From positions 1-64,000 of the IMG/VR virus record IMGVR_UViG_3300037502_002993: 64,000 nucleotides of DNA. One strand, 5' to 3'. Shown here one piece after another: positions 13,917 through 51,528 of this stretch. The notes beneath the pieces are model-generated. The model made no database searches and was not told where the DNA came from. It saw only the letters and a list, made by a program, of their open reading frames with translations. Numbering within the stretch: the first letter of the stretch is position 1; each line of letters opens with the position of its first letter. A program made the position numbers and the translations under genes.

Positions 13917-14736
13917 TCATCCTGAGCGGGCCGTAGGTACGTAATAATGCAATCGGTATCCTTCCACAACGCGACATCTAGCGATTGCTTTGATGACGTC
14001 GTTTTTACTTCCAAGGGTATTGGAAAAGTGTTCAGCTGCTTTAGTGATATTGGTGAAGAACAACTCACCGCCTTCATTGTCAACAGCAATCACACCACGG
14101 GCACGGTTTTTGGGGTTATCTCTAAAGATGGCCAAATCCCGCTCGTTGAACTCCGGCCAGGGAGTGTCATCGCCCTCTTGACGAAACAGGTAGCCGTAGT
14201 AAGGCCTGTCCCATTTTTTCTTGATCTGATTAAGAAGTCCTCCAGGATACTCTAACCTTAAGTCTTCATTGACACTCCCCTTCTTTTAAGAAGGGGATTC
14301 TTGCTTCATTGAACTGACTTACCTTCGGTAAGGAAGGCAGTGGTCACTTTCTCCACAAGCGTTTAGTGAGTCCGTATGCCCTACGGCCTCTGCTAAAGTC
14401 ACACTCAATGGGCCAGCGATAGCGATACCCAATGTTTGATGGGTGGAGGTTATCCCAATTCCCATCGATGTGAAACGGTTCGACCTTCCACCAATGGTGA
14501 TAGCCTAGCCTTAACTTCCCAAACGCCGCCAGTACCAACAGAGCGACGGGGATTTCACTTATCACCCCTCCAGTGTTAACGCTAACTACCCACCCTAGCA
14601 TCTCATCAAAGCTAGGGGTTATTTCCACCCCGTTATGGAAAACCTGGCCGCTTTCCATAACCCTGACTTCCCCGGTAGTCAATGCCGGATCAATCAGTCC
14701 AAACCCTTGTTCGTTAGAAAGGTACTTTTCAAACAT
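13917..14736 (-). pseudogene. Intron-encoded HNH-type homing endonuclease, disrupted by a TnpB right-end insert
   Basis: N-terminal part 14409..14736 has HIDGNWDNLHPSNI; C-terminal part 13917..14267 is open for 116 codons with GYLF..PWP and a NUMOD1-like FTNITKAAEHF. Confidence 0.75.
14269..14408 (-). mobile_element. Stand-alone IS200/IS605 right end / TnpB omegaRNA, copy 1
   Basis: Near-identical to 50072..50212; ends GGGGAGTGTCAA on the minus strand; no tnpB and no left end. Confidence 0.88.
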
Positions 14737-14801
14737 TTCAACCTCCTAAACTCCTGCAATAGGAGGAAGAATATCGTTATGCATTAGTTACGGGTCGCTC
14801 C

Positions 14802-15992
14802 ACCATGCAAAAAATCCGTGAGCTTATAGCCCCCATCGACCATCATTGGCCAATCATAGGTGATCTCCACGCGCCACTCATCCAGGGTATCGAGCTTATG
14901 CATACGCGTAAGCTTGCGTTCATGGAGCGGTGTGGGGAGATAGATCAGGGCCTCTACGATCAGCTGTTGAAACTCAGGGGTGATACGCGGTGAGCCGCGA
15001 CGATCCCTCTTGAGCTGTTCATAGACCTTAAGGATGCGGCGATAGTACTCGCACTGGGCTTCGTAATACTTACGGGCTTGGCGATCCATTCCCGTGGGTG
15101 TTGGACTTGGGTTAACGCGCTCGTCATGGTAGACCTTCACATCCACAATGCGCGCGCCGGCCCGCGCCCACAGCACGCGATCAAAATCGTGCTGAATCTC
15201 ACGCAGTGCCCTTGGCGTCATATCGGCAATCCCAAGAACGGGATCGCGATCTCGGGTCGCCATGACAACCCCATCAGGGCCGATGATATCGCCGATATCG
15301 GGAAACGCCTTGTAGGTGTTAGCATCACCATGGACATTGAGCGGAAATGACTTCTTACCGAAGCTTCCGACAATGGTCTGATAGCGGTGAGCGGTGAGTT
15401 TCTTCAGAAACCCCTCGCGGACCAGAAACCCATCCTCGATGGTACTGGGCAGTGAGAAGAAACAGACCTGGGCTTCGGTACCAATACCGTAGCTCCCATC
15501 ATCCATCTTGGCAATGCTGTCAGCCAGTGACTCCCCTTTCTCGAAGTTGGCACCAGGGGCAAGTCGCTCCAAAGCACGGGAGTTGGGCCTTAGCGGGTAA
15601 CCAAACTCCGTGTGTAATGCCTCGTATTTCTTAAGGCGCAAGATCCCGACGGTTTTATAAGGGTCATCGAAATCCTCATAAACGATCAGGGTTTCGGGGT
15701 TTTCACGAATGCTATCCTCCCCTACCCCTGGCGTATAGCGACGGATCACATCCCTTACCGTGGCGTTACAAGGAAAGGTTGCACCAAAGGTCTCTCTGCC
15801 GTACTTGATCTCCTGACCAGTTTGGATTTTTCTTGGCTCCACACCTTCCACCACCAGGGCTTGCCCTAGCTGGGTCGCGCCCATGGCCTTACGCGCAGCG
15901 GTGTTATTGCGAAAGAAGGGGTCGAGTGCTCCCGTACCCAGTAGTGTGGCTTTGAGTTCACGGGCTTCTTCAGTGGGATTAGGGTTGATCAT
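14802..15992 (-). CDS. nvRNAP beta-like subunit, exon 1 (phiKZ gp71-like)
   Basis: R..M..QLGQA, TIEDG and terminal GYKLTDFLHG motifs. Confidence 0.88.
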
Positions 15993-16041
15993 TACCTACC
16001 TCTTCTCTTCTATGAGTTACCAGTCCATAGCCTACATGCGG

Positions 16042-16056
16042 ATAATGTAGGTGTCA
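16042..16056 (-). promoter_or_regulatory. Conserved phage promoter-like motif (also 2465-2479, 21250-21264, 31811-31825, 32455-32469, 41398-41412)
   Basis: Minus-strand TGACACCTACATTAT-like motif recurs just upstream of minus-strand operon starts and resembles the phiKZ early TATTAC-type element. Confidence 0.65.
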
Positions 16057-16072
16057 CAAGAGAACGAATCAC

Positions 16073-16438
16073 ATGGCCTTTACCATCGAATCACTCTCTA
16101 AGGAAACACAAGGGCAGCTACGAGACCGTCCCGATTACCGCTGGATGATCGAACAGCACCTTCCTCTACTGCGGCAATCACCCAATGTTCGGGCTGAAGT
16201 CATTCCCTCTGTCGTGGTCTTGCAGTTTCAAGGGAACTTCTATGCCCTGCTGCTATCACTCGGGATAGAGCGACGTCATCACTGGCTCTACTTACGGATG
16301 AATCGAATGACCCACCCCATGCAGTTTGGTGAGTCACTAGGGGATCAGGTGTCAGGGGGTGATTACCCACTCCTCCACCCGCCCATGGAAGACATCGAGC
16401 GATTAAGGAAGCGCTTCAGTACCGTAAAGGGACGTTAG
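16073..16438 (+). CDS. Conserved jumbo-phage protein (phiKZ gp70 position)
   Basis: 121-aa counter-oriented ORF next to the gp71-like gene; synteny. Confidence 0.7.
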   Translation: MAFTIESLSKETQGQLRDRPDYRWMIEQHLPLLRQSPNVRAEVIPSVVVLQFQGNFYALLLSLGIERRHHWLYLRMNRMTHPMQFGESLGDQVSGGDYPLLHPPMEDIERLRKRFSTVKGR

Positions 16439-16491
16439 GGCAAAGAAAAAGCCCTCCCCATTGGGGAGGGCCACTATGCCGCCAGCGTCAG

Positions 16492-17838
16492 TTAAACGGC
16501 CGTATAGGGGTTACCTGACGGCCCTGAGGGTTGGTAGTATGACTGTTGTTGCGGTTGTTGGTATTGCGGTTGTTGGGGGTGTCCTCCTTGGAGGTAAGCT
16601 GGGCCCTGCTGCATTGGCTGTTGCGGCTGGGGCGAAGGCCACCCTGGGGGCTGCTGTTGGTACTGGGGTTGACCATACCCCATGGGAGGTTGGGCATACT
16701 GCGACTGTTGATACCCCATCTGCTGTTGCGGATACCCCATCTGTGGTTGTTGGGGGGCCTGCGCTTGATGACGCTGGCGCAGCTCTTCCATGGTCAAACC
16801 ACGACGCGGTTCTTCCTTAGGTGCCTTTGCAGCTTGACGTGAAGTTGGGGCTGGGGTCTGCTGATTGGGGGTTTGACGAGAAGCTTCCCAGGGTGGCTCA
16901 CGATCCACGATAGAAAGGGCAGCCTTCTCCGCTTCCCGATCGTACTCCCCCTCGATCTCCTCTTGCCCTTTAGCCAGATTGCCCTCATTACCTTCCAGTA
17001 TCGGGATGGCTCGATGGAAGTCATCGATCTTTTTCAGGTGTTTCATGAACTTCAGATCGAAAGGCTCCAGGTCCAGATTGACCTGATCCCCAAACAGCGC
17101 GATCAGCTCATTGAACCGAGCGGCCAGATTACCAAACCCCTGAAGGAACGCCTCAAGGAAAGGGGCCGTTTGGTTATTGCTCCCACCACTGTAGGTTTCG
17201 ATCTTATCCCCCTCGGGGAAAAGGTAGTCGAGGAGTCCCAGAATCGCCTTGCGATGCTTCTTACGCATGGTGACCCCATAGGGCGTTTCATCCGACTCAT
17301 CCCTCAACGTCTCGATGAAGGGGAAGCGTACCACACACAGCCGGTTGTAGGCAACATCCCCCAACTCGCCATTGGGCTTAAGATACACTGTGATCAGGGC
17401 ATTCTTCTTCAGTGCCGCGGTGATGAGTTCGTTAAGTACCTTGGGGGTTTTGCTGTCCGCTGTGGTGGTCTGCTTGAGGAACTCACTGCACTCCGGTGAG
17501 AGGTCCTTGTGCAGTGACGGGGTGGCGGCAATGGACATCAGCGTCTCTGATACCCGCAGTGTGTACTGCGCCAACCGTGCCTTTGCGATCTGCTGCATCT
17601 TGGTCAGGACGTGAGAGGGCCCCTTACGGGCCAGGTTCTCACCGATGGGGTGAAAGGCGATCAACTCTTCAGTGATGCCATCGTCCAAGCGCTTTTTGGT
17701 GGGAAGTACCAGGCGACGCCCATCAATGGAAATGGGCTTGGCAATCCCCCCAGGTTCGCAGAAAGAGATATACCCTTCACGATCGGCTGAGCAGGAGAGG
17801 CCCTTGAGGACCTCCCGGTAAAAGGTTAAAATATCCAT
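16492..17838 (-). CDS. picA: Probable nuclear-shell import factor PicA/Imp1 (phiKZ gp69-like)
   Basis: Position directly downstream of the gp68-like gene; RLVLPT and FHPIGEN motifs; Q/P/Y/G-rich tail. Assignment rests mainly on synteny. Confidence 0.6.
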   Translation of the reverse strand: MDILTFYREVLKGLSCSADREGYISFCEPGGIAKPISIDGRRLVLPTKKRLDDGITEELIAFHPIGENLARKGPSHVLTKMQQIAKARLAQYTLRVSETLMSIAATPSLHKDLSPECSEFLKQTTTADSKTPKVLNELITAALKKNALITVYLKPNGELGDVAYNRLCVVRFPFIETLRDESDETPYGVTMRKKHRKAILGLLDYLFPEGDKIETYSGGSNNQTAPFLEAFLQGFGNLAARFNELIALFGDQVNLDLEPFDLKFMKHLKKIDDFHRAIPILEGNEGNLAKGQEEIEGEYDREAEKAALSIVDREPPWEASRQTPNQQTPAPTSRQAAKAPKEEPRRGLTMEELRQRHQAQAPQQPQMGYPQQQMGYQQSQYAQPPMGYGQPQYQQQPPGWPSPQPQQPMQQGPAYLQGGHPQQPQYQQPQQQSYYQPSGPSGNPYTAV

Positions 17839-17848
17839 GGGGTGTTCC

Positions 17849-19489
17849 TTAGATCAGACCCGTGTAACGGTCAGCGTTGGAGGAAGTGGGAGACGCATTG
17901 TTATCTGGCGTTTGCGAGGAGGTGGTGAGGACGGCGTTATCGAACGCAGGGATATTGGGATTGTAAGCTACCCCAGAGATCGTGGGTTCAGGAATGACCT
18001 CATCGAGCAGATAGAGGAGATCGGTTGAGATCTTATCGGCCCGTTCGCGATCATTGGTCACCACCGGGGTGAACAGGGAATCCACAAAGGTGGGCGCTAC
18101 CCACCGGATGGGTCCCTCTGCCCCAAGTCGCAGCATGATCACCGTGTCCCCGGAGATATCACACCCCACTGAGAGTTCAAAGGAGATCTGGTTGTTACGG
18201 GTGATCACATTGAGTAGATCCACCCCAAGTCTCCGTTCGAACTCCGCCAGGTGGGGAGCCAGGTAGAGGTTATCCTCAATGGCCCGTACACTGTTGTTGT
18301 CCGCAAACGACATCCGGTAGTTACCCGGTCCATGACCATTAGTCACGTTAATCGCCACATAGCGCAGCAGGTTGTCCATCATAATAGCAGGCAGTATCTG
18401 AGCGATAGAGCTCGCCGCTACCGTGATTTCATTACTGCCCCGCCAGTGCTCGCTGTCCTCTGCTTGGTTGACGCGACGAATAGATTGCCCGGTGTCCATT
18501 CCCGGTGGTGGGGTCACCTGCTCACTGCTGACTTCCGGGAAGATACTGGAGAGTTCCGCCAGAGTGACAAAACCCTTCTCCATGTACCCTGCCTGGGTCT
18601 TGAGGAGCTGGAAGAAGCTGACCTTGTGGATATGGTCATTGGCAATACGACTCCCGGCTTCCCGGTAGAGCGATGCCTTATCATACCCAAAGTTCCCCTC
18701 CATGACGTTTTCTTTATGTGCGTGCTGGTACCCCAACAGGGTTTTGTGCAGGTACCGACTCGGGGAGGCATCGTGTCGGCGAGAATATTGGTACATGGTA
18801 CCGTCTGACACTGTTGAGCGCTGGTCAAGAATCTCCACCGGACCATTCCCGAAGTTACCAAACTGGCGCAGCTTCTCTACCGCCTGTTGACTGTGCCCGT
18901 GATAGAAGATATCATCCGGACGGATCAAGAAGTTGGTGTTATGACCAAAGGCGGTGGTAACGCCTGGGGCATTGGCCATGTCCACGGGAGAGACAATCTG
19001 GTTAGAGCCGATGGGTCGGACGTTCCAATACCCCCCTTGCGGTGAGGTCTCGTAGGTACATGAAAGGGTGGTCTCACTGTTGAAGTAGATACGCATGTTG
19101 GGATCAGGGCGCCCGGTATGGCTCAGATCGGCCGCATCGGAGTACCCAAAGAAGATCCGCTTGATCTGCTGGTGGGGCTCCGCCGGGTTATACTCAAGGA
19201 CTTTCATCATGAAGCGAAAACGCCGCGTGCGCCAGCCGTTTACCACATGAGCCTCACCCTGGGTGGTGAACTGGGGACGCAGGATATCCCCAGCCACTCC
19301 TTCTACCGCAGAGATCCCAACATTGAGGCCCCCTTGGGTCGCTTCAGTGAGGGCGTCTCTGAGACCGCGTGCGACATTGGTTTCAAACGGACGGATCATC
19401 TGTTCGGTATAGGTACCGGATTGTACCAATAAGAACAGTTGAACGCTGACTTTCTTATCGGCATTGAACCCTTCGGTATGACTGAACAT
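17849..19489 (-). CDS. nvRNAP promoter-specificity subunit (phiKZ gp68-like)
   Basis: 546 aa; synteny; GTY..Q..RPF and NGW..RRFRF motifs. Confidence 0.7.
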   Translation of the reverse strand: MFSHTEGFNADKKVSVQLFLLVQSGTYTEQMIRPFETNVARGLRDALTEATQGGLNVGISAVEGVAGDILRPQFTTQGEAHVVNGWRTRRFRFMMKVLEYNPAEPHQQIKRIFFGYSDAADLSHTGRPDPNMRIYFNSETTLSCTYETSPQGGYWNVRPIGSNQIVSPVDMANAPGVTTAFGHNTNFLIRPDDIFYHGHSQQAVEKLRQFGNFGNGPVEILDQRSTVSDGTMYQYSRRHDASPSRYLHKTLLGYQHAHKENVMEGNFGYDKASLYREAGSRIANDHIHKVSFFQLLKTQAGYMEKGFVTLAELSSIFPEVSSEQVTPPPGMDTGQSIRRVNQAEDSEHWRGSNEITVAASSIAQILPAIMMDNLLRYVAINVTNGHGPGNYRMSFADNNSVRAIEDNLYLAPHLAEFERRLGVDLLNVITRNNQISFELSVGCDISGDTVIMLRLGAEGPIRWVAPTFVDSLFTPVVTNDRERADKISTDLLYLLDEVIPEPTISGVAYNPNIPAFDNAVLTTSSQTPDNNASPTSSNADRYTGLI

Positions 19490-19536
19490 GGAGGTGTGCT
19501 CCTTACATTAGGCCTAATGTGTGTTGCCGTTCAAAC

Positions 19537-21204: not shown

Positions 21205-21461
21205 CGTGGATCGTCAATAACAGATACTGTCCGAGTGAACAGCACCTTCATGATGTAGATCTCTAACTCCTTTGGTTAAACCCCTTCTAAAACGCTCTAT
21301 TTTACGCTGTAAGCGTTTTTATGCCGTAAGTAGTAGTTGGGTTAGGGGTGGGTTCTTTTAAGCCTTAGAAGAGCAAATAGAGCCCATTCCTAACATTTTA
21401 CTGTGCTCAGTGCCTCGCGGCAAAATGGACCTCCGAAGAGGTCCACTTGGATAACTGATAC

Positions 21462-22187: not shown

Positions 22188-22283
22188 GTTCATTTCCTTA
22201 TTAACGTAAGAATCAAGCGCCACTCTGCCTATACGGTAGTGACCCTCGGTAGTGCACTGAGAATGGATGCGATTGATCTCAAG

Positions 22284-23105: not shown

Positions 23106-23111
23106 GGGGCG

Positions 23112-25357: not shown

Positions 25358-25405
25358 GGGGGCTCCGTTAGGTGGGTTGGTTCGTATTATGACGACAATC
25401 AGTAA

Positions 25406-25810: not shown

Positions 25811-25869
25811 AATAACCTCCTTAAACGAAGAAAAAATAAAGGGCAACACGAGGTTGCCCAGAGGATCAC

Positions 25870-27935: not shown

Positions 27936-28402
27936 CGGTGCCTTCAGTAGGGGGCGTTACTCCCTACCCGCTACCCTTCTGTCTCTCGACAGTAAGGCGC
28001 TGCTCCAGGTTTTCCCTGGATGCCGAGACTATATCTTCACCCGCCAGCTTTAGACTGGGTAGGGTGTCTTCCGTTTCCCCGCCCGATCACTTGGCAGGTA
28101 CAGGGGCCCGAATCCCTTAGTCGTTGGGCACATCCCATATCCCTGTAAAAGGAACTTAGGGACTTCGCTGCGTGATTCCCCATTTTGCCTTATCTAGCGC
28201 ATCCTCGTCTCTTTTACTGTACCGCTGTGGTTAGCAGCGCCCCTGTGGGGTGTCTGACGACACCGGTCACTCTTTCGAGCACAGGTTAGTGTACGAGGCT
28301 TTAGTGGGTTCCCGTCAATTAGGAAGAACACCGCCCAGAACTTTCATCCTGGGGGAACATTAGGAAAGTTTCTCCAATCGAGGTATTTTAACTTTCCTGT
28401 CT
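27936..28402 (-). ncRNA. Group I intron 1 of the beta' gene (467 nt)
   Basis: AATTGACGGGAA, AATCACGCAGC, GACTAAG and AAGATATAGTC core elements; starts after CCC AAT; its P1 pairing is not obvious by eye. Confidence 0.85.
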
Positions 28403-29650
28403 ATTGGGGGCTTTCAAAACTAGCGCAGAAAGTCCAATGGTGTTATCAGCCACATTGGACTTAAACTTGGTAATGAAGAATTGCTGGGTACTCCCTCGTT
28501 GAAGTGTTGGATTCCTGGAGAAGATACAACTGATGCCTTTTCCTGGTGCCTCATCTACCAGTTCTTTCAGTAATGCCTCCATCATGGGGTTGAATGAGGA
28601 CACACTGCGGTAGACAAAGTCCATGGCTTGTGTGCTGGTCATGCCACGCTTAAGCAGCTTATTGACCAGGTGGTACTTAAACAACTGAATACCCAACCCC
28701 CACGGCAGGTGCAGTTCATCGTAGTCATGGGGGTCGGTAATACTGGTGATAACAGCTCGTGCTGTGTAATGCAGGCGAGAACCGAAGACATGCTTACGCA
28801 GAACCCCACTCTTTGAGGCCATGCGGTCCTTCATGAAACTGTGGTAGTACTGACACAGTGACTTGATGGACGAAGAGACCCGATTCTCCACATCCGCCTG
28901 CCGGAGTGGGACCACGCTACTACTGGCACTGGCCATAGTCAATACCGCGTCTTTAGCTGCGTTCAGTGGGTTGTCCACATAGCGGCCCGAGTTGGTACTC
29001 TCCATGACGAAACATACCCGATTGGGCACCATCAGGTATTTCGGAAAGAACAGATGTCGGTAGGTATCGATCCACGTCATAAACTCATGGCGTTCTTTGA
29101 CGTTGTTGCCGAACATTTTCTCGCTAGCAAAGAACTCAATGTGTTTATCAAAGTCCTCCACAAAGGCTTTAAACCCCCGTCTCGGGTTATACGCCAGAAA
29201 CCGATCCAGTCGTTTTCTGGTTTCCTTCCCCATGGGTTTTTCCATATCAAACCGATATTTGGTATTGATCAGATACTCAAGGAAATCCACATGGCCTGTC
29301 TTGAGTTTGGGCTCAAGGATCAGGTACATCTCCGGGTGCATAAGAGCCGGTACCCCTTCCGGGGCCTGTAGCCAGAGCACACTCTTAATGGCTTGGGTGG
29401 TGGTGGATTCCACTGGGGTTTTACACACACTACACACAATGCCGATCTCATCCACACGGGTGTGCTTCTGACAATGGCACGTAGCTCCGAACTCGATGGT
29501 ATCGGTGTGATCGTAATGGGTGATGAGGTGCTTGTCCAATAACTCCTTTTGTTCCGGAATGGAGATGTCAAACTTGTTGGCGATGAGGGGATCAAACGTT
29601 AGACGCGCAAACTCCTCATCATAGTTGACCATTGTAGCAACAATGCCCAT
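28403..29650 (-). CDS. nvRNAP beta' N-terminal subunit, exon 1 (phiKZ gp55-like)
   Basis: Zn-finger CHC..CSVC, KSGVLRKHVFGSR, ARAVITS, RNPTL; ends LKAPN just before ADFDGD. Confidence 0.92.
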
Positions 29651-29756: not shown

Positions 29757-31736
29757 TCAGTAGTAACGACCGGAACCCGCCACGTTGCCCTGATAGACAT
29801 GCCCGCGGTTCTGGTTCACCGTGGAACCGCCCTGGTGAATGTGTGCCTGACCGTCCACCGCGAACTGACTCATGAACTGGTTGCCGGCGAAGCGCTGGTT
29901 GCCACCCAGGACCTGAGAGATGTTCTCCAGCTCGACCTGCAAACCAGCACCAGCAGTGGCATCGTCCAGTGCCTTGATGAAACCAGGCGTCAGCGCCAGA
30001 CGCGCAGCACGACCAGTCACCTCCACACGAGAGCCCGCGTACTGACGGGTCAGCTTCTCCAGGCGATCCAGGCGCATGGCAGCCGGCATGGTGCCGAAGC
30101 CGCCCGGGTTGTTGCCGCAGAAGATCGCGTACCACTCATCGAACGCCACCTGGTCGCCCTTGGTGATGTTGAGCATCGCCAGCACGTCCAGTTCACGCAG
30201 ATCGCGGATCTGACCCTGATCATCCACCCAGCGACCCAGCAGGATCTCCTGGTTGGTGTGACGTACCAGTGGATCGCCCTCAGCAATGGCCTGGGAGAAA
30301 CGACCACTGGTCAGGTTATCAGCCGCGGCAATCAGACGCTTGCGTGCCTGGTTCTGGTACTTGCCAGGGGTGGCAGCGTCCAGCAGGAAGGTTTCGAAGG
30401 CGGAGTTCTCACTCATCGGCTGTACGTCGATGAGAAACGCCGGCATCGCTTCCATGGCATGACGAACGAACTCCAGGAAGTTCTGATCGGAGTAGTTCTT
30501 GGCCTTCAGGTCCACGTACTGGAACTCGGAGAAGGGCATCTTGTAGCCCAGTGCACCGATATCCTTCCAGTCCACCCCTTTCACACCCAGGCGCGGCTTG
30601 AGGGCTTCCAGCCAGGCGTAGTTGTAGGTCAGGCGGAATGCGTTGGACAGACCCAGCATGTAGAACTCACCCGTCTGGGACTGGATGTGCGGGGCCGGGC
30701 AGTTATTGGTGATGACCACAGTGGGCATGAAGGGTTGGGTCACCTGCTGCTGATTGGGAGAACCCCAACCGCCCTGCGGCTGACCACCGATGACACGACC
30801 GCCAGTGAACTCCACCCCAACGAAGCAGGACAGTTCATTGAGGGCGGTGTTCTCCTCGTAGAACTCATCCTCGTCCTTGGTATCCCCTTCGACCTGAGCG
30901 CCCATCCGCACAATCACGTCAGAGCGGATCGGATTGCCGACAATGTCGAACTTCGGCTCAGCAGTGAAGTCGAAAGAGGCTACGAAGCGGGTGTTGCTCG
31001 CTGCCTGACCGTTTTCGTTGATCGGCTTGAGGTCTTCGATACGGAAGGGCACTTCCCCAGCGAAGATCTGGATGCCATCGTCCACCCGGTTGACGGAATC
31101 GATCAGCAGGCGCTTGACCTCCACGGACTCCAGCTTGAAGTCGAAGTGACGTGGCACCAGAATGGGACCTGCGTCGATCGCGGTGACGTCACGACCTTCC
31201 GGCTGAATGCCCAGTTGGTTGAAGACGGTGTTGACCACCTTGGCCCAGTACTTCTCAGTGTAGACGTCCTGGCTGAAGGTTGTGACCTCGATCTGGGTCT
31301 GACCCACCCACTCCTTGCGCTTGCGCAGGGGGCGATCGGAATCCAGCATCACAACGCGGATGGCCACGGCGGTCTTCTGAGCGACCTGAGCGACCTTCAC
31401 CACCAGGATGGAACTACGACCCACACGGTGGGTTTCGGAGTCGAAGCGGATCAGGTGGAAGTCGTCGGGCATGCGCTGCATTTCGACTTCGGTTTTGTAG
31501 GCATCACGGATGGCGGTGAAGGCCTGGGAGGTGCGCTCTTCGCCACCGTCCATCTGACCGGAACGACGGAACACGGTGTTGATGTCACGGGGGTCGTTCA
31601 GGCCCCGTGCGGCGGGTTTGGGCGCTGCAGCACCCACATTACCGCCATAGCCAGTCGGACCACGACCCGTCGGCTGCGGTTGTGCCTTGGGCTGCTCGGG
31701 CTGGTTCTGGTTGCTTTCGTTATCGCGGATACCCAT
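29757..31736 (-). CDS. chmA: Chimallin, major nuclear shell protein (phiKZ gp54-like)
   Basis: 659 aa from MGIRDNE; directly upstream of the gp55-like gene; strong codon bias; disordered N-terminus; GNPIRSD, DIGALG, RDLRELD motifs. Confidence 0.85.
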   Translation of the reverse strand: MGIRDNESNQNQPEQPKAQPQPTGRGPTGYGGNVGAAAPKPAARGLNDPRDINTVFRRSGQMDGGEERTSQAFTAIRDAYKTEVEMQRMPDDFHLIRFDSETHRVGRSSILVVKVAQVAQKTAVAIRVVMLDSDRPLRKRKEWVGQTQIEVTTFSQDVYTEKYWAKVVNTVFNQLGIQPEGRDVTAIDAGPILVPRHFDFKLESVEVKRLLIDSVNRVDDGIQIFAGEVPFRIEDLKPINENGQAASNTRFVASFDFTAEPKFDIVGNPIRSDVIVRMGAQVEGDTKDEDEFYEENTALNELSCFVGVEFTGGRVIGGQPQGGWGSPNQQQVTQPFMPTVVITNNCPAPHIQSQTGEFYMLGLSNAFRLTYNYAWLEALKPRLGVKGVDWKDIGALGYKMPFSEFQYVDLKAKNYSDQNFLEFVRHAMEAMPAFLIDVQPMSENSAFETFLLDAATPGKYQNQARKRLIAAADNLTSGRFSQAIAEGDPLVRHTNQEILLGRWVDDQGQIRDLRELDVLAMLNITKGDQVAFDEWYAIFCGNNPGGFGTMPAAMRLDRLEKLTRQYAGSRVEVTGRAARLALTPGFIKALDDATAGAGLQVELENISQVLGGNQRFAGNQFMSQFAVDGQAHIHQGGSTVNQNRGHVYQGNVAGSGRYY

Positions 31737-31957
31737 GAGGGCTTTCTCCTTGCGTTTTATTGCAGTCGACTGCAATGCTGTCCAGTTAACTGGACGGCTC
31801 TTGCCTGTGAATGATGTGGGTTTCAAATCTGTTCGGATAAACCCACACCAGAATCCTTGCGTTACGACATACCGCTTAATGGCCTAGAAGGCCCGTGAGA
31901 CTGTCAGGTGACAATCCCCTATAAGATAACATTCCCAGTATTTTTCTACATGGGCAT

Positions 31958-33811: not shown

Positions 33812-34019
33812 CTAGGGCTTGCGATTCAGGTTTAGAACCGCCTGCGTGGCGAAGCGCTCCAAGATATCGCCGTGGCACGCCTGGGGTGCACAGAAACACA
33901 CCAGGTCCTTTCCATCGAGTTCGGCCAGTTCCTCCAAAGAAACCTCCCCTGCACGAATTCGGCGAATGAGGTCGAGGCGGTAGGCCTCCACTACCACTTC
34001 TCGTGTACCGTCCTTTCCG
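33812..34019 (-). pseudogene. DUF4326-like gene, C-terminal remnant (N-terminus MAVLNKHKQ at 35172..35198)
   Basis: GTREVVVEAYR..ELDGKDLVCFCAPQACHGDIL; split by the tnpB element. Confidence 0.8.
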
Positions 34020-35173
34020 TTGACACTCCCCCTCCTAAAGTAGGGGGATTCTTGCTTCATTGAACTGACTTACCTTCGGTGAGGAAGGCAGAGGCCCTGT
34101 TCTCCACAAGCGTTTAGTGAGTCCGTATGTCCTACGGCCTCTGCTGACTCATAGCTCAAGCTACATCTAAGCGGTGTTCTTGGATAAACACCGCCGTCAG
34201 TGTTTGTCTTAAGTGACTCGCTGGTGGGAGTTGTTCCAATGCCATGTTCCGCAGGTTGATGGCGGCATTGTGATCTCGATCATGCTGTGTTCCGCAACTA
34301 GGGCACTCCCACCAGCGTTCGTTCAGTTTAAGTTTGTTGGACCCTTCTAGTCGATGGTCACACGCACTGCACGTCTGTGTACTCGGAAAGAATCTCTCTG
34401 CAATGACGACCTTGCAGTGCTGCGACTCATCGGCCTTGTAGACCAACATGGACAGGAACTGACGCCATCCACAATCAGCAATGTGTTTGGCTAGACGTCG
34501 GTTCCTGACCATGCCTTCAATGTTGAGGTTCTCAATAGCAATGGTCATGCATTGGTCTACAAGACCTCTGGAGAGCTTGTGCTGAAAGTCCATCCGACAC
34601 CGCTTGGTTTTTGCGTATATCTTGGCGACTTTCAGCCGTTGTTTTCTGTAGTTGGCACTACCCCTCACCATTCTTGCTAACTTCCGTTGTGCTCGTGCCA
34701 ACCTGACCGCATGTTTCTGTTGGTATTTGGGATTGTCATACTCCTTCCCTTCTGAGTCTACCGCAAAGGTCTTAATCCCTAAGTCCAATCCCAAATGAGA
34801 CTCCCCATTCGTGAGTCTTGGTTCACATTCACAAATGAAACAGGCGTAATATTCCCCACTAGACTCACGAATAATACTGACAGAACTGGGTGGGGTGGGG
34901 AGCACCCCACCCCACTTTTCGTTCTTGTAACTCCATTTAGTTTTGATAGGGGAATGCATTGCCTTAGCAATGCAGAATTCCCCACTCTCCAAATCTAAGG
35001 AGAATGCAGCGTTCGTCAGTCGGATGGACTGACGACTTTGTTTCTTTTTAAACTTGGGAAATCCAATCTTCCCTTTTCCTTTAAAGAAAGATTGGAAAGT
35101 TGTCCCGAGGTCCCTAAGAGACTGCTGCAAGATGACTGAGGAGACCTCATAGAGAAACCCATGCTCTTTCTTT
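34020..35173 (-). mobile_element. 5'-truncated tnpB element, copy 2 (right end/omegaRNA at 34020..34155)
   Basis: Colinear with 50072..51232; homology stops at 35173; no left end. Confidence 0.88.
34156..35173 (-). pseudogene. tnpB: TnpB lacking about 68 N-terminal residues
   Basis: RuvC GLDLG, IENL, DRDHNAA and the Zn finger are retained; in-frame TAA just upstream and no native start. Confidence 0.85.
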
Positions 35174-35210
35174 GTTTGTGTTTATTCAGTACGGCCATTA
35201 AAGGACATCC

Positions 35211-39548: not shown

Positions 39549-39558
39549 AACTCTGTCC

Positions 39559-41348: not shown

Positions 41349-41596
41349 GTTGTTCTTCCCTTAGCCGTAAGTTCAGCTGTCTACACCTATCTTGGAGATG
41401 ATGTAGGCGTGAAAAAAACTCAACTGGAGCGCCCATCTGTGTGTCCAGAGGGGTCATCTGTCGTTAACCCTGCGAAAACGCTCTGTAAGGCTCTACAGGC
41501 CGCGTTCTATATAATCCGCTACCCAAGTATTCCTCTAACCAGAAAACGGCACCTAGGTACCTTATCGTGCCTTCTCGCCCTATATAGGAGCTGTCC

Positions 41597-42394: not shown

Positions 42395-42412
42395 CTGTTA
42401 GGAGTCCGGACT

Positions 42413-43249: not shown

Positions 43250-43264
43250 AATGAAGGAGTTAAC

Positions 43265-44089
43265 ATGAAAAGCAAGCTACAAATCGGCAGTACTGCGGAT
43301 AACAATCAACTCAACCTGCCTTCTGGGATGTTGACTATTGACCGGGAGCGTAACGCGCTCCGACTGTTCGATGGAGAAACCCAAGGCGGCTTTGAGGTCC
43401 TGGGAACACGGGCCTATGAGCCCTCACCTCCTGGACCCACTGAGTTAATTGCGGGTGATTTAACCACTGGTTTTTATGGCGAGGTGGGGCCTGAGGAGTT
43501 CATCACCTACGGTGCCCTGAGTACCTTGGTTGGGTTGAGTGCGGGGACCCTCCAGCATGATGCTGAATCCCTCTGGCTGAAGTTCTCCCTCGATGGGTCC
43601 CCGCTGTACGTCATGAAGAAGCCTGCACGACACACGGTGTCGTGGGATCAGCTGCACGCAGCGGGCCTGGTCTTTGGGACCAACACTGTGGAGATTGATG
43701 GACTCACCTACCAGGTCCGCCTGCTCCGTGGCGCTGCCTCCGACCCCACCACCGATGCCACGGGTTGGGACCTCCCCACCAGCCACGGGTCGGAGTGGAA
43801 CCGGTTGTTGTACCCCATCCACTCCGGTGTGCACACCGACACCAGTAACCCCAGTGTGCACACCGACCCCACTGCCGCGCCTTTCGGCGCCTGGGCGCAG
43901 TACAGTGACAGTGATTTGGTATTACGTGGTACCGACAATGGTCGCGCCAACTGGTGTCAAGAAACCACCGCCACCAGCACCCAGCGCGTGTCTCGTGGTT
44001 CTGGTGTTACGTCCTTGTCTCGCTCCACCTCTTCGGGTACGGCTTCGCTTTTCGGTTGGCGTGCCGCTCTAGTCTTCGTTGGCGACTAG
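43265..44089 (+). CDS. Putative virion/tail protein of the GFYGEV..GWR family; candidate DGR target
   Basis: N-terminal LRLFDGETQGG module; GFYGEV, WLKF, SEWNRLLY, WCQE..RG..GWRAAL; adenine-depleted 3' end. Confidence 0.8.
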   Translation: MKSKLQIGSTADNNQLNLPSGMLTIDRERNALRLFDGETQGGFEVLGTRAYEPSPPGPTELIAGDLTTGFYGEVGPEEFITYGALSTLVGLSAGTLQHDAESLWLKFSLDGSPLYVMKKPARHTVSWDQLHAAGLVFGTNTVEIDGLTYQVRLLRGAASDPTTDATGWDLPTSHGSEWNRLLYPIHSGVHTDTSNPSVHTDPTAAPFGAWAQYSDSDLVLRGTDNGRANWCQETTATSTQRVSRGSGVTSLSRSTSSGTASLFGWRAALVFVGD

Positions 44090-44246
44090 CGCGAGCGACT
44101 GGCCTTTCAGGCCGAATAAGCTACAGGTGTAAGTACGTTGGGACCCTTAGTACAGTAACGCCTGGACATGGGTCCCAACCGTGGTTAAGAAATAAAGCGC
44201 AACGTAACCCCCCTCCCGCAGTGGGAGGGGGGTTTATGTCGTTTAC

Positions 44247-44954
44247 CTAAGACATTACGTCTTCCACATCCCACAGTAAATGTTGAAGAAATCCGGCACC
44301 GGCCTCTTCGGTTCTATTCCACCAACGGAAGATCCAACTAACATACGCTTCACTGGATTCCTCGTTTGGGTGGGATTCCAGGGTACCGATCTCAAATACC
44401 ATGCCGTGCGGGAGCCATGCGTCGACTAACAACTCCCAGGTCTCACTATTACCTTCCTCAACTACCACGCACAGGTATCCCGGTTCGTCGTCAACGTCTT
44501 GGTGGATATGTCCACTACATGACCAGACCGTGGCGATTCCGGGAAGTTGGTTCAGTGCCTGCACTAACTCACGAATGGGCTCATCCAGACAGCTAATGTC
44601 AAGTGCCAGGGCATGGGTCTTAAAGAAAGCAAAACGTTCCGTCGGTAAGTATTGACACTCCCCTTCTTTTAAGAAGGGGATTCTTGCTTCATTGAACTGA
44701 CTTACCTTCGGTAAGGAAGGCAGTGGTCACTTTCTCCACAAGCGTTTAGTGAGTCCGTATGCCCTACGGCCTCTGCAGCCAAATGACCTCACCAGGAGGT
44801 CACGCTGTTTCGCATTCGGATAGATCCGAAAGCGAAACGCTTTCGTAACCATGATGACCTCCTGGGAAAGTGGATTGGTGTGTATGTTAGTATTTAGTGG
44901 TCTTATATCCCCGCCATAAATGACGGGGTTTTACGACCACAACTGATAAGGCAT
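44247..44954 (-). pseudogene. 137-aa gene with D.PI..N..T..SCSGH motif (Tyw3-like N-terminus), interrupted after codon 3
   Basis: Removing 44652..44945 gives ATG CCT TAT|TAC TTA CCG (MPYYLPTERF..LDEPIRELVQALNQLPGIATVWSCSGH). Confidence 0.8.
44652..44945 (-). mobile_element. 294-bp internally deleted (MITE-like) tnpB element, copy 3
   Basis: Left end and first about 25 tnpB codons joined to the right end/omegaRNA; inserted 3' of TTAT. Confidence 0.92.
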
Positions 44955-45028
44955 AGTAGAATTCCTAGGGCATAGGCGCCCTCCCGAAGGAGGGCAGTGT
45001 GTTGGGTGTTAGGGAATGTAAGGAGAGA

Positions 45029-45529
45029 TCATGACACCTCCCCCAGTTTAGAGGGGCATAAATAGCTATCCCAACACGGTACACTTTCACGCATTTCCAG
45101 TCTGGCTTTCTTTCTCAGCCACATCTCGGGCTCGGGTGAATCAAGGATCACGTTTTCACGGGGGATGTTCTCCGTTTCACGAAACACAAAGGTCTCTAAC
45201 AATACCTCGGGCTTTACCTTCTGCAGTGGGTAGAGGTAATCGCTATCATAGAAGAACCACATTGCGTAAGACTTCTGTAATAAGCGTCCCACAACCGACT
45301 TAGGGATAGGGAAGTAGGCAGGTTTGATTGGGAGACCATTGCACTCGGCAACCACTTCGACTCGATGATAGAGGTGGTGGTCGAACTGTGTGGTAGTAAC
45401 AAAGAGAAACCCTCCGCGTTTAGCATTAAGCTGAACCACGTGTTTGAGTGTTAGGGTAAAGGGACTCAGGACGAGTCCCAGTTCCTCACTCAGCGCTTGA
45501 CCCACCCGATGGGTTTTCTTCTTGCCCAT
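45029..45529 (-). CDS. Hypothetical protein
   Basis: 166-aa ORF. Confidence 0.65.
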   Translation of the reverse strand: MGKKKTHRVGQALSEELGLVLSPFTLTLKHVVQLNAKRGGFLFVTTTQFDHHLYHRVEVVAECNGLPIKPAYFPIPKSVVGRLLQKSYAMWFFYDSDYLYPLQKVKPEVLLETFVFRETENIPRENVILDSPEPEMWLRKKARLEMRESVPCWDSYLCPSKLGEVS

Positions 45530-45703
45530 CGGGATTCCCCAGGTTATTTAATTTTCACGCGCTCTTCTGCACTCAGGTGCTGGCCTTGCTTTTTAAGCGT
45601 AGCCACCTTGTTAGCACGCCTCTTAAAATGCTTGTTATTCTTCATCATCCGTTCTTCGATCTTCGGAGGGAGTTTATCCATGGTAGTTACTCCGTAGGTA
45701 GGT

Positions 45704-48058
<2,355 letters not shown>

Positions 48059-48068
48059 TTAGTGGGCG

Positions 48069-48392
48069 TTATTTCGGTAGGTAGTCGTCGACATTAAGGT
48101 GTTCGTGCTGACAGAACGCCTCAAAGGACGTAACCTCCACTGGGAAGGTCGGTGGAATGCTACTGCCGGCTAGACGCACCAGCTCAATCTTAGCTACCTC
48201 TTCGGCTTCATCGATCACGTGGTACCAAACCCCATCAGAGAAGGCACCTGGAACAACACCGTGCTTGCGCTTTAACTCAACGATAGCGCTAATGGTCAAA
48301 TCGTGCTCTTCAGTGCCAATCGGCGGAAGGGGAAGACGATAAACCGCTTCATGCGCATACACGCGAATGCGTTTGATCAGCAGTGCACTCAT
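48069..48392 (-). CDS. Hypothetical protein (start MSALL)
   Basis: ORF in operon. Confidence 0.55.
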   Translation of the reverse strand: MSALLIKRIRVYAHEAVYRLPLPPIGTEEHDLTISAIVELKRKHGVVPGAFSDGVWYHVIDEAEEVAKIELVRLAGSSIPPTFPVEVTSFEAFCQHEHLNVDDYLPK

Positions 48393-48409
48393 AGTCAGAC
48401 TCAACTCTA

Positions 48410-48700
48410 CTAATGGATGGCAGTTCGCCTTGCATGACTGACAATTTGGCTGACTCTCGACTCCCCTATACCGAAGGCCCTTCCAATAACGGCATAAGAG
48501 AATCCCTGCTGGGCATACACCGTGATGGCGTGGTCTCTGAGTTCCGTCAACTGGCAACTGAGTCGCCTTAGCTCCTCAATATCCTCTAACGTCATCATCT
48601 CTCCCGACTCAATGCGGGCCTGCGCTAAATCTAACTGCTGCTTGGCCTCTTGGAGATACTGCAGGGCATTCTTGTTGTGGTTCTGAATGGTGGGGGTCAT
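48410..48700 (-). CDS. Small HTH protein (sigma region-4-like)
   Basis: GFSYAVIGRAFGIGESRVSQIV. Confidence 0.7.
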   Translation of the reverse strand: MTPTIQNHNKNALQYLQEAKQQLDLAQARIESGEMMTLEDIEELRRLSCQLTELRDHAITVYAQQGFSYAVIGRAFGIGESRVSQIVSHARRTAIH

Positions 48701-48732
48701 GGTCGTGCTCTCTGTGGTTAGGTGAAGTGATA

Positions 48733-49152
48733 TTAATGGATAAAAGGTGAATCAGAATTTTCGATCGACATCACCGCCATCGGAACGCGGGGGTCAAGTT
48801 CCATGATGCTGGCAATGATATCTGTGTGTTCTTTCAGCTGTTCACTCACTGTGCTTTTACCAACTCCACGAAGTTTGGTGTTGATTCCGCTGACCTCTTT
48901 GAGTCTAGCGATCAACTCATCCAAGGTAAATTTCACCTCAAGTATTCCAGGAACTAGTTCATTGAGAAACAGATAGCCAACACTGAGGTCATGGCAATAG
49001 CACAGTATCTCAAAACCAAACTCGGGTGAGAGACCGAGTGTAGTGACAAGACCTCCCGTCTCGTCGCTTGGCTCAATCCCAAGCAGAACCACCCTCCCCT
49101 TACTTATTTCAACGCTAAGCTCTTGGTAGAACTCGTCACTGTGATCTTCCAT
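48733..49152 (-). CDS. Hypothetical protein
   Basis: 139-aa ORF. Confidence 0.6.
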   Translation of the reverse strand: MEDHSDEFYQELSVEISKGRVVLLGIEPSDETGGLVTTLGLSPEFGFEILCYCHDLSVGYLFLNELVPGILEVKFTLDELIARLKEVSGINTKLRGVGKSTVSEQLKEHTDIIASIMELDPRVPMAVMSIENSDSPFIH

Positions 49153-49170
49153 TATGGACCTTCCTTGGTA

Positions 49171-49419
49171 TCATGAGAGGGGGTGGGAAAGTGCCCGATT
49201 GAGAAGCGCTGTGTCCTCCTCTAGGCTTTTACATTGCAGAGAAACTGACTCTCCATAGCAGATTAACTCACCGTCAACATGCTTGACAAACCCCGCTGAG
49301 ATTACTCCCACTTCATCTTTCCCCAGCGATTGGGTAAAGTCACGATGTTGCACTCGTTTATCAAACGTGACCATGACGTCACGAGCCATCCCTATCTTCT
49401 TATATCGTACATATTTCAT
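49171..49419 (-). CDS. Small phage protein
   Basis: MKYV..F....QH..ISAGFV..CYGESVSL; GGAG RBS. Confidence 0.7.
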   Translation of the reverse strand: MKYVRYKKIGMARDVMVTFDKRVQHRDFTQSLGKDEVGVISAGFVKHVDGELICYGESVSLQCKSLEEDTALLNRALSHPLS

Positions 49420-49434
49420 TGTTGTATTCTCTCC

Positions 49435-50034
49435 TTAATTGCCAAGTGTGCGCAGTTGGTGGGCAATTCGCTCATCCAGTGACAATTCTTCATCAGGGTA
49501 GCGGTTCTCCTCGGCATCGAACTCGTAGAGCTCAACTTTTTCATTTAAGTACCCCTCGATGCCCTGAAGGTCCTCTGCCGTGAGGTGTAGCGTTTTGGCG
49601 TGTTTCTTCACCAAAGGCAAAAGGTCCGGGTATTGCTTGCTCCAAGGGGCTAGAATATACCCTCGGGCGTAAAGGTGTTTGAGGTTGGCATTGCCTTCCG
49701 CGTACTCCTGCGCTACTTTCAGTACCGGATCAAGCGGTTCGTAGTAACTCTTTAAGGGGTCATTGGTTTTAGCAAACCCCCAACTACGATATCGCTTACC
49801 GAAGGGGTCTTCGAAATAGGAAATCGTCACGCACTGCCAAAAGCAGGGATGGTGGGAAAGTTGGAAGGTAGCCGCATCGATCATTTCACGCCGTACGGCC
49901 AAACGGTGATGCACGCCGAGGGGTCCTGCTTCTCCCGCGATGTTGTAGCGGACGAAATAGATTCCTTCCGCCTGTCGTCTAAGGCGCTTAAAATCGGTAC
50001 CGGTGAGTTTACGCTTTTTGATTTTCTTTGCCAC
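49435..50034 (-). CDS. Hypothetical protein (start GTG, MAKKIKK)
   Basis: AAGGA RBS; the longer track start lies inside the IS right end. Confidence 0.65.
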   Translation of the reverse strand: MAKKIKKRKLTGTDFKRLRRQAEGIYFVRYNIAGEAGPLGVHHRLAVRREMIDAATFQLSHHPCFWQCVTISYFEDPFGKRYRSWGFAKTNDPLKSYYEPLDPVLKVAQEYAEGNANLKHLYARGYILAPWSKQYPDLLPLVKKHAKTLHLTAEDLQGIEGYLNEKVELYEFDAEENRYPDEELSLDERIAHQLRTLGN

Positions 50035-50071
50035 GCTTTTTTCCTTTTTCATCACATTCACTACAGTGCGG

Positions 50072-51528
50072 TTGACACTCCCCTTCTTAAAAGAAGGGGA
50101 TTCTTGCTTCACAGAACTGACTTACCTTCGGTAAGGAAGGCAGAGGCCACTTTCTCCACAAGCGTTTAGTGAGTCCGTATGCCCTACGGCCTCTGCTAAA
50201 GTCACTACTCAAGCTACATCTAAGCGGTGTTCCTGTAAGAACACCGCAGTCAGTGTGTTCCTCAAATGGCTCGCTGGTGGGAGTAGCTCCAATCCCATCT
50301 TCTTAAGATTGATAGCGGCATTGTGATCACGATCATGTTGAGCGCTACAACTGGGACACTCCCACCAACGCTCGCTGAGCTTGAGTTTGTTCTTACCATG
50401 TAGTCGATGGCCACACGCACTGCAAGTCTGTGTACTCGGGAAGAATCTCTCTGCGATAATCACCTTGCAGTGCTGCGACTCATCGGCCTTGTAGATCAGT
50501 TGGGACAGGAACTGCCGCCATCCACAATCACTGATGTGTTTAGCGAGTCTCCTGTTCCTGACCATGCCTTCAATATTCAAGTTCTCAATAGCTATTGTGG
50601 AGCATTGGTCTACAAGGTTACGAGAGAGCTTATGCTGAAAGTCTAACCGACACCGCTTGGTTTTTGCGTATATTTTAGCGACTTTCAGCTGTTGCTTTCT
50701 GTAGTTACTGGAACCTTGCTTTTTCCTAGCAAGAGAGCGTTGCGCCCTCGCCAGTCTCCTGGCGTATTGCCCTTGGTATTTGGGATTGGCATATTCCCTT
50801 CCTTCTGAGTCCACGGCAAAGGTCTTAATCCCCAAATCCAATCCCAAATGGGCGTCTCCATTCGTGAGCCGGGGTTCACACTCGCAAATGAAACACGCGT
50901 AGTACTCTCCATTGGACTCACGAATGATACTGACAGAACTGGGTGGGGTGGGGAGGACCCCACCCCACTTCTCATGCTTCTGTTTGTAACTCCATTTAGT
51001 TTTGATAGGGGAATGCATGGCTTTAGCCATGCGGAATTCTCCACTCTCCAAATCTAAGGAGAATGCAGAGTTCGTCAGCCGGATGGACTGACGACTGAGT
51101 CGTTTTTTAAACTTGGGAAATCCAACTTTCCCTTTCCCTTTGAAAAAGGATTGGAAAGCAGTCCCGAGGTCCCTAAGGGACTGTTGTAAGATGACTGAGG
51201 AGACCTCATAGAGAAACCCATGCTCTTTCTTTAACTCGGGGAGTCTCACCACGAGTGCATTCGCACTCAGTTTGGGTTTCTCTAGTGTTGGGTTTGTCTG
51301 GTAAGCCTCATACTCCTCCCGTACCCTGTTGAGTACTTGATTCCAGACAAACCGTTTACAGCCAAATGACCTCGCCAGGAGGTCACGTTGTATGGCATTC
51401 GGATAGAGCCGAAAGCGAAACGCTTTCGTAACCATGATGACCTCCTGGGAAAGTGGATTGGTGTATATGTTAGTATTTAGTGGTCTTATATCCCCGCCAT
51501 AAATGACGGGGTTTTACGACCACAACTG
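50072..51528 (-). mobile_element. Complete tnpB-only IS200/IS605 (IS1341-group) element, copy 4
   Basis: Minus strand: TTAT|CAGTTGTGG left end with CCCCGTC-ATTTAT-GGCGGGG hairpin, tnpB, omegaRNA, right-end hairpin and TCAA; no target duplication. Confidence 0.93.
50209..51435 (-). CDS. tnpB: TnpB RNA-guided endonuclease
   Basis: KAFRFRLYPN, FGC.RFVWN, GFPKFKK, RuvC D (GLDLG), E (IENL) and D (DRD.NAA), CSAC..CPSC. Confidence 0.95.
   Translation of the reverse strand: MVTKAFRFRLYPNAIQRDLLARSFGCKRFVWNQVLNRVREEYEAYQTNPTLEKPKLSANALVVRLPELKKEHGFLYEVSSVILQQSLRDLGTAFQSFFKGKGKVGFPKFKKRLSRQSIRLTNSAFSLDLESGEFRMAKAMHSPIKTKWSYKQKHEKWGGVLPTPPSSVSIIRESNGEYYACFICECEPRLTNGDAHLGLDLGIKTFAVDSEGREYANPKYQGQYARRLARAQRSLARKKQGSSNYRKQQLKVAKIYAKTKRCRLDFQHKLSRNLVDQCSTIAIENLNIEGMVRNRRLAKHISDCGWRQFLSQLIYKADESQHCKVIIAERFFPSTQTCSACGHRLHGKNKLKLSERWWECPSCSAQHDRDHNAAINLKKMGLELLPPASHLRNTLTAVFLQEHRLDVA

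Follow-up and report, generated by a model that had tools for sequence, protein, structure and literature searches.

Copies of a probable tnpB-only IS200/IS605 element with omegaRNA-type right ends in a chimallin-encoding jumbo phage

The stretch of DNA analysed here (the window) comprises the first 64,000 nucleotides of IMG/VR virus record IMGVR_UViG_3300037502_002993, a 220,598-bp sequence with terminal repeats. It contains four dispersed copies, c1 to c4, of a structured module that forms the right end of an insertion sequence (IS) encoding TnpB, and each copy is followed by a different flank that could serve as an RNA guide. We consider it probable that these loci are copies of a non-autonomous, tnpB-only IS of the IS200/IS605 group (IS1341-like, with IS608-like ends) together with its deletion derivatives, resident in a jumbo phage that encodes the nuclear-shell protein chimallin.

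The element, its copies and its right-end module

A repeat search of the window returned one four-copy, 134-nt family (14269-14402, 34020-34153, 44652-44785 and 50072-50205) with 84-96% identity to the reference copy. When aligned on the minus strand, on which all four lie, the copies share a near-invariant block of ~125 nt whose 3' end is GGGGAGTGTCAA; the modules finish in GTGTCAA, and beyond this point the flanks diverge completely. An earlier note on this DNA had placed co-oriented modules of ~125-140 nt, ending in TCAA, on the minus strand at 14269, 34020, 44652 and 50072, and had quoted four divergent flanks; the repeat search and alignment bear out the former, and the latter read exactly as quoted.

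Copy c4 is a full element. Its putative omegaRNA scaffold occupies 50072..50205 (repeat family D1), with TCAA at 50072, three predicted stem-loops and a score of 155 bits under R1, a covariance model built from the modules. Next comes an intact tnpB of 408 aa (50209..51435), an uninterrupted open reading frame (ORF), and then a left end with a subterminal imperfect hairpin and the tip CAGTTGTGGTCGTAAAACC (51436..51528), whose boundary is given by element-free alleles described below. The putative target and transposon-associated motif (TAM), TTAT, lies 5' of it at 51529..51532; genome-wide, five of the seven left ends are preceded by TTAT. On the other side of the element, the predicted guide-encoding flank CCGCACTGTAGTGAATGTG (50053..50071) lies in what was originally the 3' end of a zinc-ribbon gene and takes in the beginning of the gene that follows.

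The remaining three copies in the window are derivatives. In c3 an orphan module (44652..44776), identical to that of c1, is fused to a left end plus the first ~26 tnpB codons (44777..44945; repeat D5, 97% identical to 51359-51532). The result is a 294-nt element resembling a miniature inverted-repeat transposable element (MITE) or a palindrome-associated transposable element (PATE), preceded by TTAT at 44946-44949 and followed by the guide-encoding flank TACTTACCGACGGAACGTT (44633..44651). Copy c2 combines a module (34020..34153; 151.6 bits under R1) with a tnpB remnant at 34159..35178 in which codons 67-408 remain open (86.5% identity over this range by tblastn). It has lost the N-terminus, any ATG and the left end, and its boundary falls 33 nt past the stop codon of the DNA polymerase gene. 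Its flank, CGGAAAGGACGGTACACGA (34001..34019), has no second match in the genome or IMG/VR. Copy c1 is a right end only (14269..14408), including ~6 nt of the tnpB stop region, with the flank TGAAGACTTAAGGTTAGAG (14250..14268), which likewise has no match elsewhere. All of these features are on the minus strand.

The census was extended to the whole 220.6-kb genome by BLAST, pattern searches and the covariance model, and gave exactly eight full modules and ten right-end tips. Full elements number three: c4, c6 (92.6-94.0 kb, tnpB at 92.7 kb) and c8 (190.2-191.6 kb, tnpB at 190.3 kb). The single N-truncated tnpB is that of c2; two elements of 220-300 nt retain the left end and the module (c3, and c7 at 95.8-96.0 kb), and two loci are right-end modules alone (c1, and c5 at 81.2 kb), giving four orphan modules (c1, c3, c5 and c7). 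The earlier note's single intact TnpB with catalytic D-E-D is correct for the window and becomes one of three in the genome. Two 45-nt mini-elements (96.10 and 180.82 kb; genome 96096-96140 and 180818-180862, minus strand) read TTAT, then a left-end tip joined directly to the right-end hairpin with its terminal TCAA (CAGTTGTGGTCGTAAAACC-hairpin-AGTGTCAA), and lack the omegaRNA scaffold; from their sequence, they may be minimal TnpA substrates. At c5 (genome 81215-81370; locus L007), a phage ORF runs in frame into what is left of tnpB, its five final codons (RLDVA*), and terminates at the tnpB stop; an intrinsic-terminator-like hairpin lies inside the guide region.

The ends are those of the IS200/IS605 group, with TTAT followed by CAGTTGTGG and a hairpin on the left, a hairpin followed by AGTGTCAA on the right, subterminal hairpins and no terminal inverted repeats. 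Insertion also follows the pattern of this group, leaving no target-site duplication and a scarless empty site. Elements with both ends and no protein gene, as in PATEs and MITEs, are c3 and, outside the window, c7, c9 and c10; c1, c2 and c5 have no left end and fall outside this class. The absence of tnpA that the earlier note reported for the window extends to the whole genome: the Y1 (HUH) profile PF01797 has no match at E<=1 in the 220.6 kb while controls respond, and no resolvase-type (serine-recombinase) TnpA is present in the window or the genome. The elements are thus non-autonomous, as a Y1 TnpA is needed for autonomy, though not for membership of the tnpB-only group.

The TnpB of c4 carries the Pfam domains HTH_OrfB_IS605, OrfB_IS605 and Cas12f1-like_TNB (E 6e-17, 2.5e-28 and 7e-20) and matches the ISDra2 TnpB structures 8bf8/8exa/8h1j at full length (E 2e-61). 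The RuvC triad D200/E284/D370 is invariant in c4, c6, c8 and the c2 remnant, and the CxxC..CxxC zinc finger is conserved in the three full proteins, which are ~83% identical to one another. The tnpB genes are under purifying selection, with dN/dS of 0.07-0.17 at dS 0.6-0.9 (0.11-0.17 for c4 against the other copies). Among 5.8 billion proteins, the lineage is represented, besides the genome itself, by a single 50-kb contig with phiKZ-type structural genes (78% identity), and the next relatives (52%) are on contigs with jumbo-phage domains of unknown function (DUFs). A scan of representative bacterial genomes in GTDB, made with two peptide patterns only, found TnpBs of 43-51% identity and none above 51%, and the lineage looks phage-resident. 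More broadly, tnpB is no rarity in phages: 413 INPHARED records contain matches. A TldR-type regulator, with a dead nuclease site and a promoter-directed guide, was considered and rejected, as the catalytic residues are intact and the guides match solely their own flank. At 50209-51435 the source gene calls are fragmentary, comprising an 84-aa TNB piece and an antisense ORF of 79 aa, and the 408-aa ORF is absent from the protein collection; automatic annotation would therefore miss the intact TnpB.

The right-end module has the structured character of an OMEGA-type RNA. RNAalifold folds the eight modules into three stem-loops; compensatory changes are seen at seven of the 35 predicted pairs, and the pairing of the terminal hairpin is among those compensated. 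R1 recovers the eight full modules at 118-155 bits in the whole genome and also detects modules beside distant TnpBs; the core GAGGCCGT..ACGGACTCGTAAAACGCTTGTGGAG..GAAGCAAGAATCC-hairpin-AGTGTCAA recurs on 28 IMG/VR contigs beside TnpBs that are only 33-52% identical. An alternative long-range helix pairing GCAGAGGCC with GGCCTCTGC has two mismatches in c1/c3, its segment is absent in locus L039, and we do not claim it. Modules c1 to c7 are 87-100% identical to one another, even though synonymous changes in the neighbouring tnpB genes are close to saturation, which indicates constraint, gene conversion or both. Two pairs of modules, c1 and c3 and c4 and c6, are 100% identical, the latter despite a dS of 0.9 between their tnpB genes, and this suggests gene conversion between right ends inside the phage genome. 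The c5 and c7 modules match no other copy exactly (87-94%), but every stem is preserved in them, and each has a compensated pair of its own. Orphan scaffolds as a group are 88-100% identical to those of the intact copies.

Modules run in the same orientation as the flanking genes, and all ten right-end tips in the genome are on the minus strand. This bias fits co-orientation with transcription, selection against antisense insertions or a lagging-strand preference of TnpA, and cannot be attributed to any one of them. A scan for sigma-70 promoters and terminators found no minus-strand terminator between the upstream genes and c3 or c4. On the opposite strand, at 44659-44680 and 50079-50100, the right-end hairpin together with the TTCTTGCTT after it is scored as an intrinsic terminator, which could block antisense transcription into the element. 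The scan as a whole performed at chance level, and its relevance is doubtful for phages with their own RNA polymerases.

Origin of the copies and natural element-free alleles

Close relatives of the phage were located through cluster membership of small proteins that flank the copies. The NAD-ligase proved a poor anchor, swamped by bacterial LigA, and IMG/VR searches with the flanking Stc1-like protein and the DNA polymerase recovered no close relatives.

Copy c4 is a recent, precise and scarless insertion. Locus L019 is 99.3-99.8% identical on both sides of the c4 site and free of the element, reading ...GATCGTCGTTAT|CCGCACTGTAGTGAATGTG...; its empty-allele junction is ...CGTCGTTAT|CCGCACTG..., that is, CGTTAT followed by CCGCAC. 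Metagenome contigs from freshwater (X2) and sludge (X6) join 50070 directly to 51528, skipping exactly 1457 nt, and a further run (X5) holds a diverged empty site. The element-free allele, TTAT plus the c4 guide, thus occurs in at least three other samples. As L019, X2 and X6 lack the element, the insertion can be dated as recent, and the target predicted for this TnpB exists in nature as an allele of relatives more than 99% identical to the phage. Insertion replaced the last 20 residues of the zinc-ribbon protein, including a CxxC, with four residues, damage that is the behaviour of a selfish insertion.

Copies c3 and c1 were formed by deletion. At the c3 site, loci L015 and L016, from other samples, have the same TTAT and left end and run on into tnpB past the c3 deletion junction, while L074 joins the exact right flank of c3 to a full right end and the 3' half of a tnpB that is 97.6% identical to c4. 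Because L015 and L016 continue into tnpB and L074 holds the full right end, c3 is an internal deletion of a full element, made in place. For c1, the upstream HNH-like ORF extends 34 codons beyond the start of the module in the relative L014, and the 5' junction of c1 sits on ~10 nt of microhomology with this ORF; the deletion that gave rise to c1 thus joined the HNH gene to the stop region of tnpB. The HNH-like ORF itself (14344-14736; motif HIDGNWDNLHPSN; no Pfam hit) encodes 130 aa here, where it is cut by the module, and 164 aa in L014. The earlier note had proposed that different deletions each spared the module. The relatives confirm a deletion origin for c1 and c3; the claim does not extend to the two mini-elements, which have lost the scaffold.

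Retention of the scaffold and a proposed mechanism

Three patterns suggest that the module is kept beyond chance. The first is that no copy is partly eroded: the derivatives hold either the whole module (c1, c2, c3, c5 and c7) or a tip of ~22 nt (the two mini-elements). The second is that the 5' boundary falls no more than 32 nt from the module start in four of the five module-retaining derivatives (c4 coordinates 1318, 1334, 1340 and 1350), a clustering with a chance probability of ~1e-6 to 1e-5 by a hand estimate that assumes independent one-step deletions and uniform end points. The third is that a sensitive nhmmer search found three remnants with only a right end and none with only a left end. 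Whole-module orphans also recur on seven unrelated viral contigs. Together, these patterns make constraint on the scaffold suggestive, not proven.

The anatomy and logic of an omegaRNA-type right end with its flank as guide, as put forward in the earlier note, hold, and we propose the following mechanism from established TnpB biology. Each module would be transcribed by read-through together with its downstream flank, yielding an omegaRNA in which the flank is the guide. TnpB would bind and trim this RNA and cut any genome in which TTAT precedes the same flank, which is the element-free allele. Cleavage could follow excision by TnpA or take place in a co-infecting relative, and recombinational repair from an element-bearing genome would then restore or spread the element. 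Self would be spared on this scheme: in every occupied allele TCAA, not TTAT, precedes the guide's own locus, in agreement with the earlier note, and elsewhere in the genome there is no TTAT-adjacent near-match to any guide. Orphan modules are by-products of internal or left-side deletions. Their scaffolds could plausibly be served in trans by the three TnpBs, as they are 88-100% identical to those of the intact copies, and the orphans would then hitch-hike on the same drive. We judge the chances evenly balanced that orphan modules are loaded and competent, and doubt that such loading measurably biases inheritance. We read the system as primarily selfish, with any phage benefit a secondary marker exclusion; that the arrangement is maintained for the sake of such a benefit we regard as highly improbable.

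Several observations weigh against this interpretation. The numbers are small (three against none; four of five), and the deletions may be non-independent, for example if MITE-like intermediates were trimmed stepwise. As c1 and c3, and c4 and c6, have identical modules, the intactness of c1 and c3 may reflect recent origin or gene conversion, not selection, and the loss of the scaffold from both 45-nt mini-elements makes the module dispensable in some derivatives. No target consisting of TTAT plus guide was found in IMG/VR for the right-end-only copies c1, c2 and c5, and copies of this kind cannot be re-mobilised by TnpA. In X11, the sole RNA-labelled run, the ~93% identical copy belongs to another organism and occupies a different site, and this is no proof of transcription. 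No TnpA donor was found, and the TnpB lineage appears only on jumbo-phage-like contigs, not in representative bacterial genomes. Finally, the chimallivirus nucleus generally excludes DNA-targeting nucleases.

Plain IS decay accommodates many of these points and is a real possibility, if short of an even one. In this account, the orphans are inert relics that look intact through recent deletion or gene conversion, and TnpB, if active, serves full-length elements only. The two identical module pairs fit such relics, as do the youth of the c3 deletion (a relative more than 95-99% identical still has the full element at the site), the entire loss of scaffold in two derivatives and the failure of the c1, c2 and c5 guides to find a target. 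What simple decay explains poorly is the absence of any partially eroded module among ten copies, the crowding of deletion boundaries near the module (no more than 32 nt away in four cases out of five) and the zero left-end-only against three right-end-only remnants. It also leaves aside the recurrence of whole-module orphans on unrelated viral contigs, and the modules of c5 and c7, which are not identical to any other copy and nevertheless preserve every stem.

A second alternative, that the modules are kept only as transposition ends, we hold to be quite unlikely. The derivatives would then be MITEs or PATEs whose right end is needed by a TnpA of the host or of another element, with no RNA function. 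Both ends are indeed present in c3 and c7, the mini-elements look like minimal TnpA substrates, the terminal hairpin has compensated pairing and c4 transposed recently. The same mini-elements show, however, that ~22 nt of right end are enough and 125 nt unneeded; c1, c2 and c5 retain the entire module although, without a left end, they cannot transpose, c3 was produced where it stands and not by transposition of a MITE, and the phage has no tnpA.

The weakest alternative, and a very unlikely one, is the earlier note's adaptive distributed guide set, in which tnpB-less guide loci are kept so that TnpB destroys element-free co-infecting relatives as a CRISPR-like weapon of the phage: natural TTAT-plus-guide alleles for c4, the sparing of self, the conserved modules and the protein-guided precedent of PhiPA3 gp210 in chimalliviruses speak for it, but guides fixed by insertion history are each aimed at their own empty site with no mechanism for acquiring useful ones, c4 costs a zinc-ribbon gene 20 aa, a CxxC among them, and c1 lies in an HNH gene that is disrupted, both in the manner of selfish insertions, cutting followed by repair converts a rival instead of killing it, and three intact tnpB genes leave no single hub. 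The different guides follow automatically from the different insertion sites, and are a by-product of them, not a designed set.

Phage setting and comparison with known systems

A homologue of chimallin is encoded at 29781-31589 (-), with 38% identity to PhiPA3 gp53 (E 1.9e-102), and the long plus-strand ORF at 29799-31814 is its antisense shadow. The DNA polymerase belongs to the divergent family B type found in jumbo phages and shares 52% identity with that of PhiPA3 (divDNApol). Because chimallin is encoded, it is reasonable by homology to take the phage as nucleus-forming (Chimalliviridae-type), a premise that the earlier note had assumed. The chimallivirus nucleus excludes Cas nucleases. 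It is possible to go further and suppose that a jumbo-phage-endemic TnpB lineage is imported into the phage nucleus and serves there, guided by RNA, as a gene drive or an interference system among phages that infect the same cell, with the tnpB-less modules as trans-served guide-only loci. We consider this unlikely; if true, it would be the first RNA-guided DNA nuclease known to work inside a phage nucleus, and a naturally occurring halfway stage from a transposon nuclease with one guide to a CRISPR-like arrangement with many.

Other features of the window are noted here for completeness. Two related group I introns, at 13574-13948 (-) and 28003-28379 (-) (Rfam 73.8 and 65.5 bits; repeats D6, D7 and D9 of the window repeat search), each split a phage RNA-polymerase (RNAP) beta gene. 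One PHROG RNAP beta family is covered at positions 5-400 by ORF 14784-15992 and at 404-696 by ORF 12580-13518, and a second at 1-416 of its 478 positions by ORF 28388-29650. The first of these genes is interrupted by a 1.26-kb insert (13519-14783, minus strand) that comprises the HNH-like ORF, the c1 module, 320 nt of unassigned sequence and the ribozyme core; the arrangement of intron and RNAP beta gene corresponds to PhiPA3 gp211/gp210/gp209. Comparison of L074 with the genome brought to light a ~180-nt repeat family, 83-89% identical and unrelated to the IS, with members at 43883-44063 in the window and at 115311-115491, 137063-137243, 151485-151664 and 172358-172537 in the genome. Repeats D8 and D10 are two ~100-nt direct repeats (4041-4216 and 4804-4994) that are 75-79% identical and lie ~770 nt apart.

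Two further classes of locus were considered and set aside. For an IStron, the group I intron would form part of the element, and Rfam group I matches occur only at the two intron positions given above, none of them inside the element, with the c1 module lying upstream of the ribozyme core. A CRISPR-Cas12 locus is not indicated, since the modules are dispersed 5-20 kb apart with one flank each and the repeat search found no repeat-spacer array. There is a resemblance to IStrons (PMC10690162) in that a group I intron and an IS605-type right end lie within 320 nt of one another at c1; unlike in IStrons, their order is inverted, the intron is not part of the IS and the other seven modules have no intron.

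The biology of TnpB and of omegaRNA-guided elements was reportedly set out by Karvelis and by Altae-Tran in 2021. Against this background, the phage element is closest to the tnpB-only elements ISDra2, IS608 and ISGst. It shares with them the protein domains, the D-E-D triad, a length of 408 aa, subterminal hairpins and a scarless empty site, as well as a structured module at the right end, with the flank beyond it as the prospective guide. As in IS608, insertion is 3' of a T-rich tetranucleotide and the right end finishes in TCAA. Unlike these elements, it resides in a chimallin-encoding jumbo phage with no tnpA in the genome, its TAM and activity are predicted, and its closest TnpB relatives (78% and 52%) are on jumbo-phage-like contigs, not in bacteria.

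The orphan modules find their counterpart in PATEs, whose omegaRNAs are served in trans by TnpB (Meers 2023, PMC10055086). Both c3 and c7 are protein-less elements with a left end, a right end and the whole module, and would need TnpB in trans in the same way; in contrast to PATEs, c3 was formed by deletion in place and not by MITE amplification, and c1, c2 and c5 differ from strict PATEs in having no left end. The omegaRNA can be self-processed from the mRNA (PMC10278001). A 2026 review includes a category called 'transposon non-restorative homing', whose targets are coinfected phages and plasmids (PMC13565253). In it, TnpB cuts the orthologous site that lacks the transposon, in a phage or plasmid present in the same cell, and the element is copied in; the cutting of element-free alleles is exactly what the earlier note envisaged. 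It is a conceptual category that rests on plasmid data, and we found no documented phage example.

The HNH nuclease gp210 of PhiPA3, which is encoded in an intron, enters the phage nucleus by import and cuts a chimallivirus that infects the same cell (Birkholz et al. 2024, PMC11620839). Like gp210, a TnpB that tells element-plus from element-minus alleles would act on co-infecting relatives, and c1 even shares the genomic context of gp210, a group I intron and HNH gene within an RNAP beta gene. The difference is that gp210 is protein-guided, with import and activity demonstrated, whereas the TnpB described here would be RNA-guided and is known from sequence alone.

Both the service of orphan omegaRNAs by TnpB in trans and its homing into the genomes of co-infecting phages have thus been put forward before in the literature. 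To our knowledge, the role of TnpB in homing has been shown in bacteria and plasmids, and not in phage-phage competition. With three intact TnpBs, eight guide modules (four of them without a nuclease gene) and occupied and empty alleles in near-identical phages, the phage offers a natural test system, and one suited to asking whether an RNA-guided DNA nuclease enters the chimallivirus nucleus; if TnpB cannot enter, the elements must persist by another route, which would itself be informative. What is new in comparison with the known systems is the setting: a nucleus-forming phage with a resident TnpB lineage in several diverged copies, together with orphan modules and natural plus and minus alleles.

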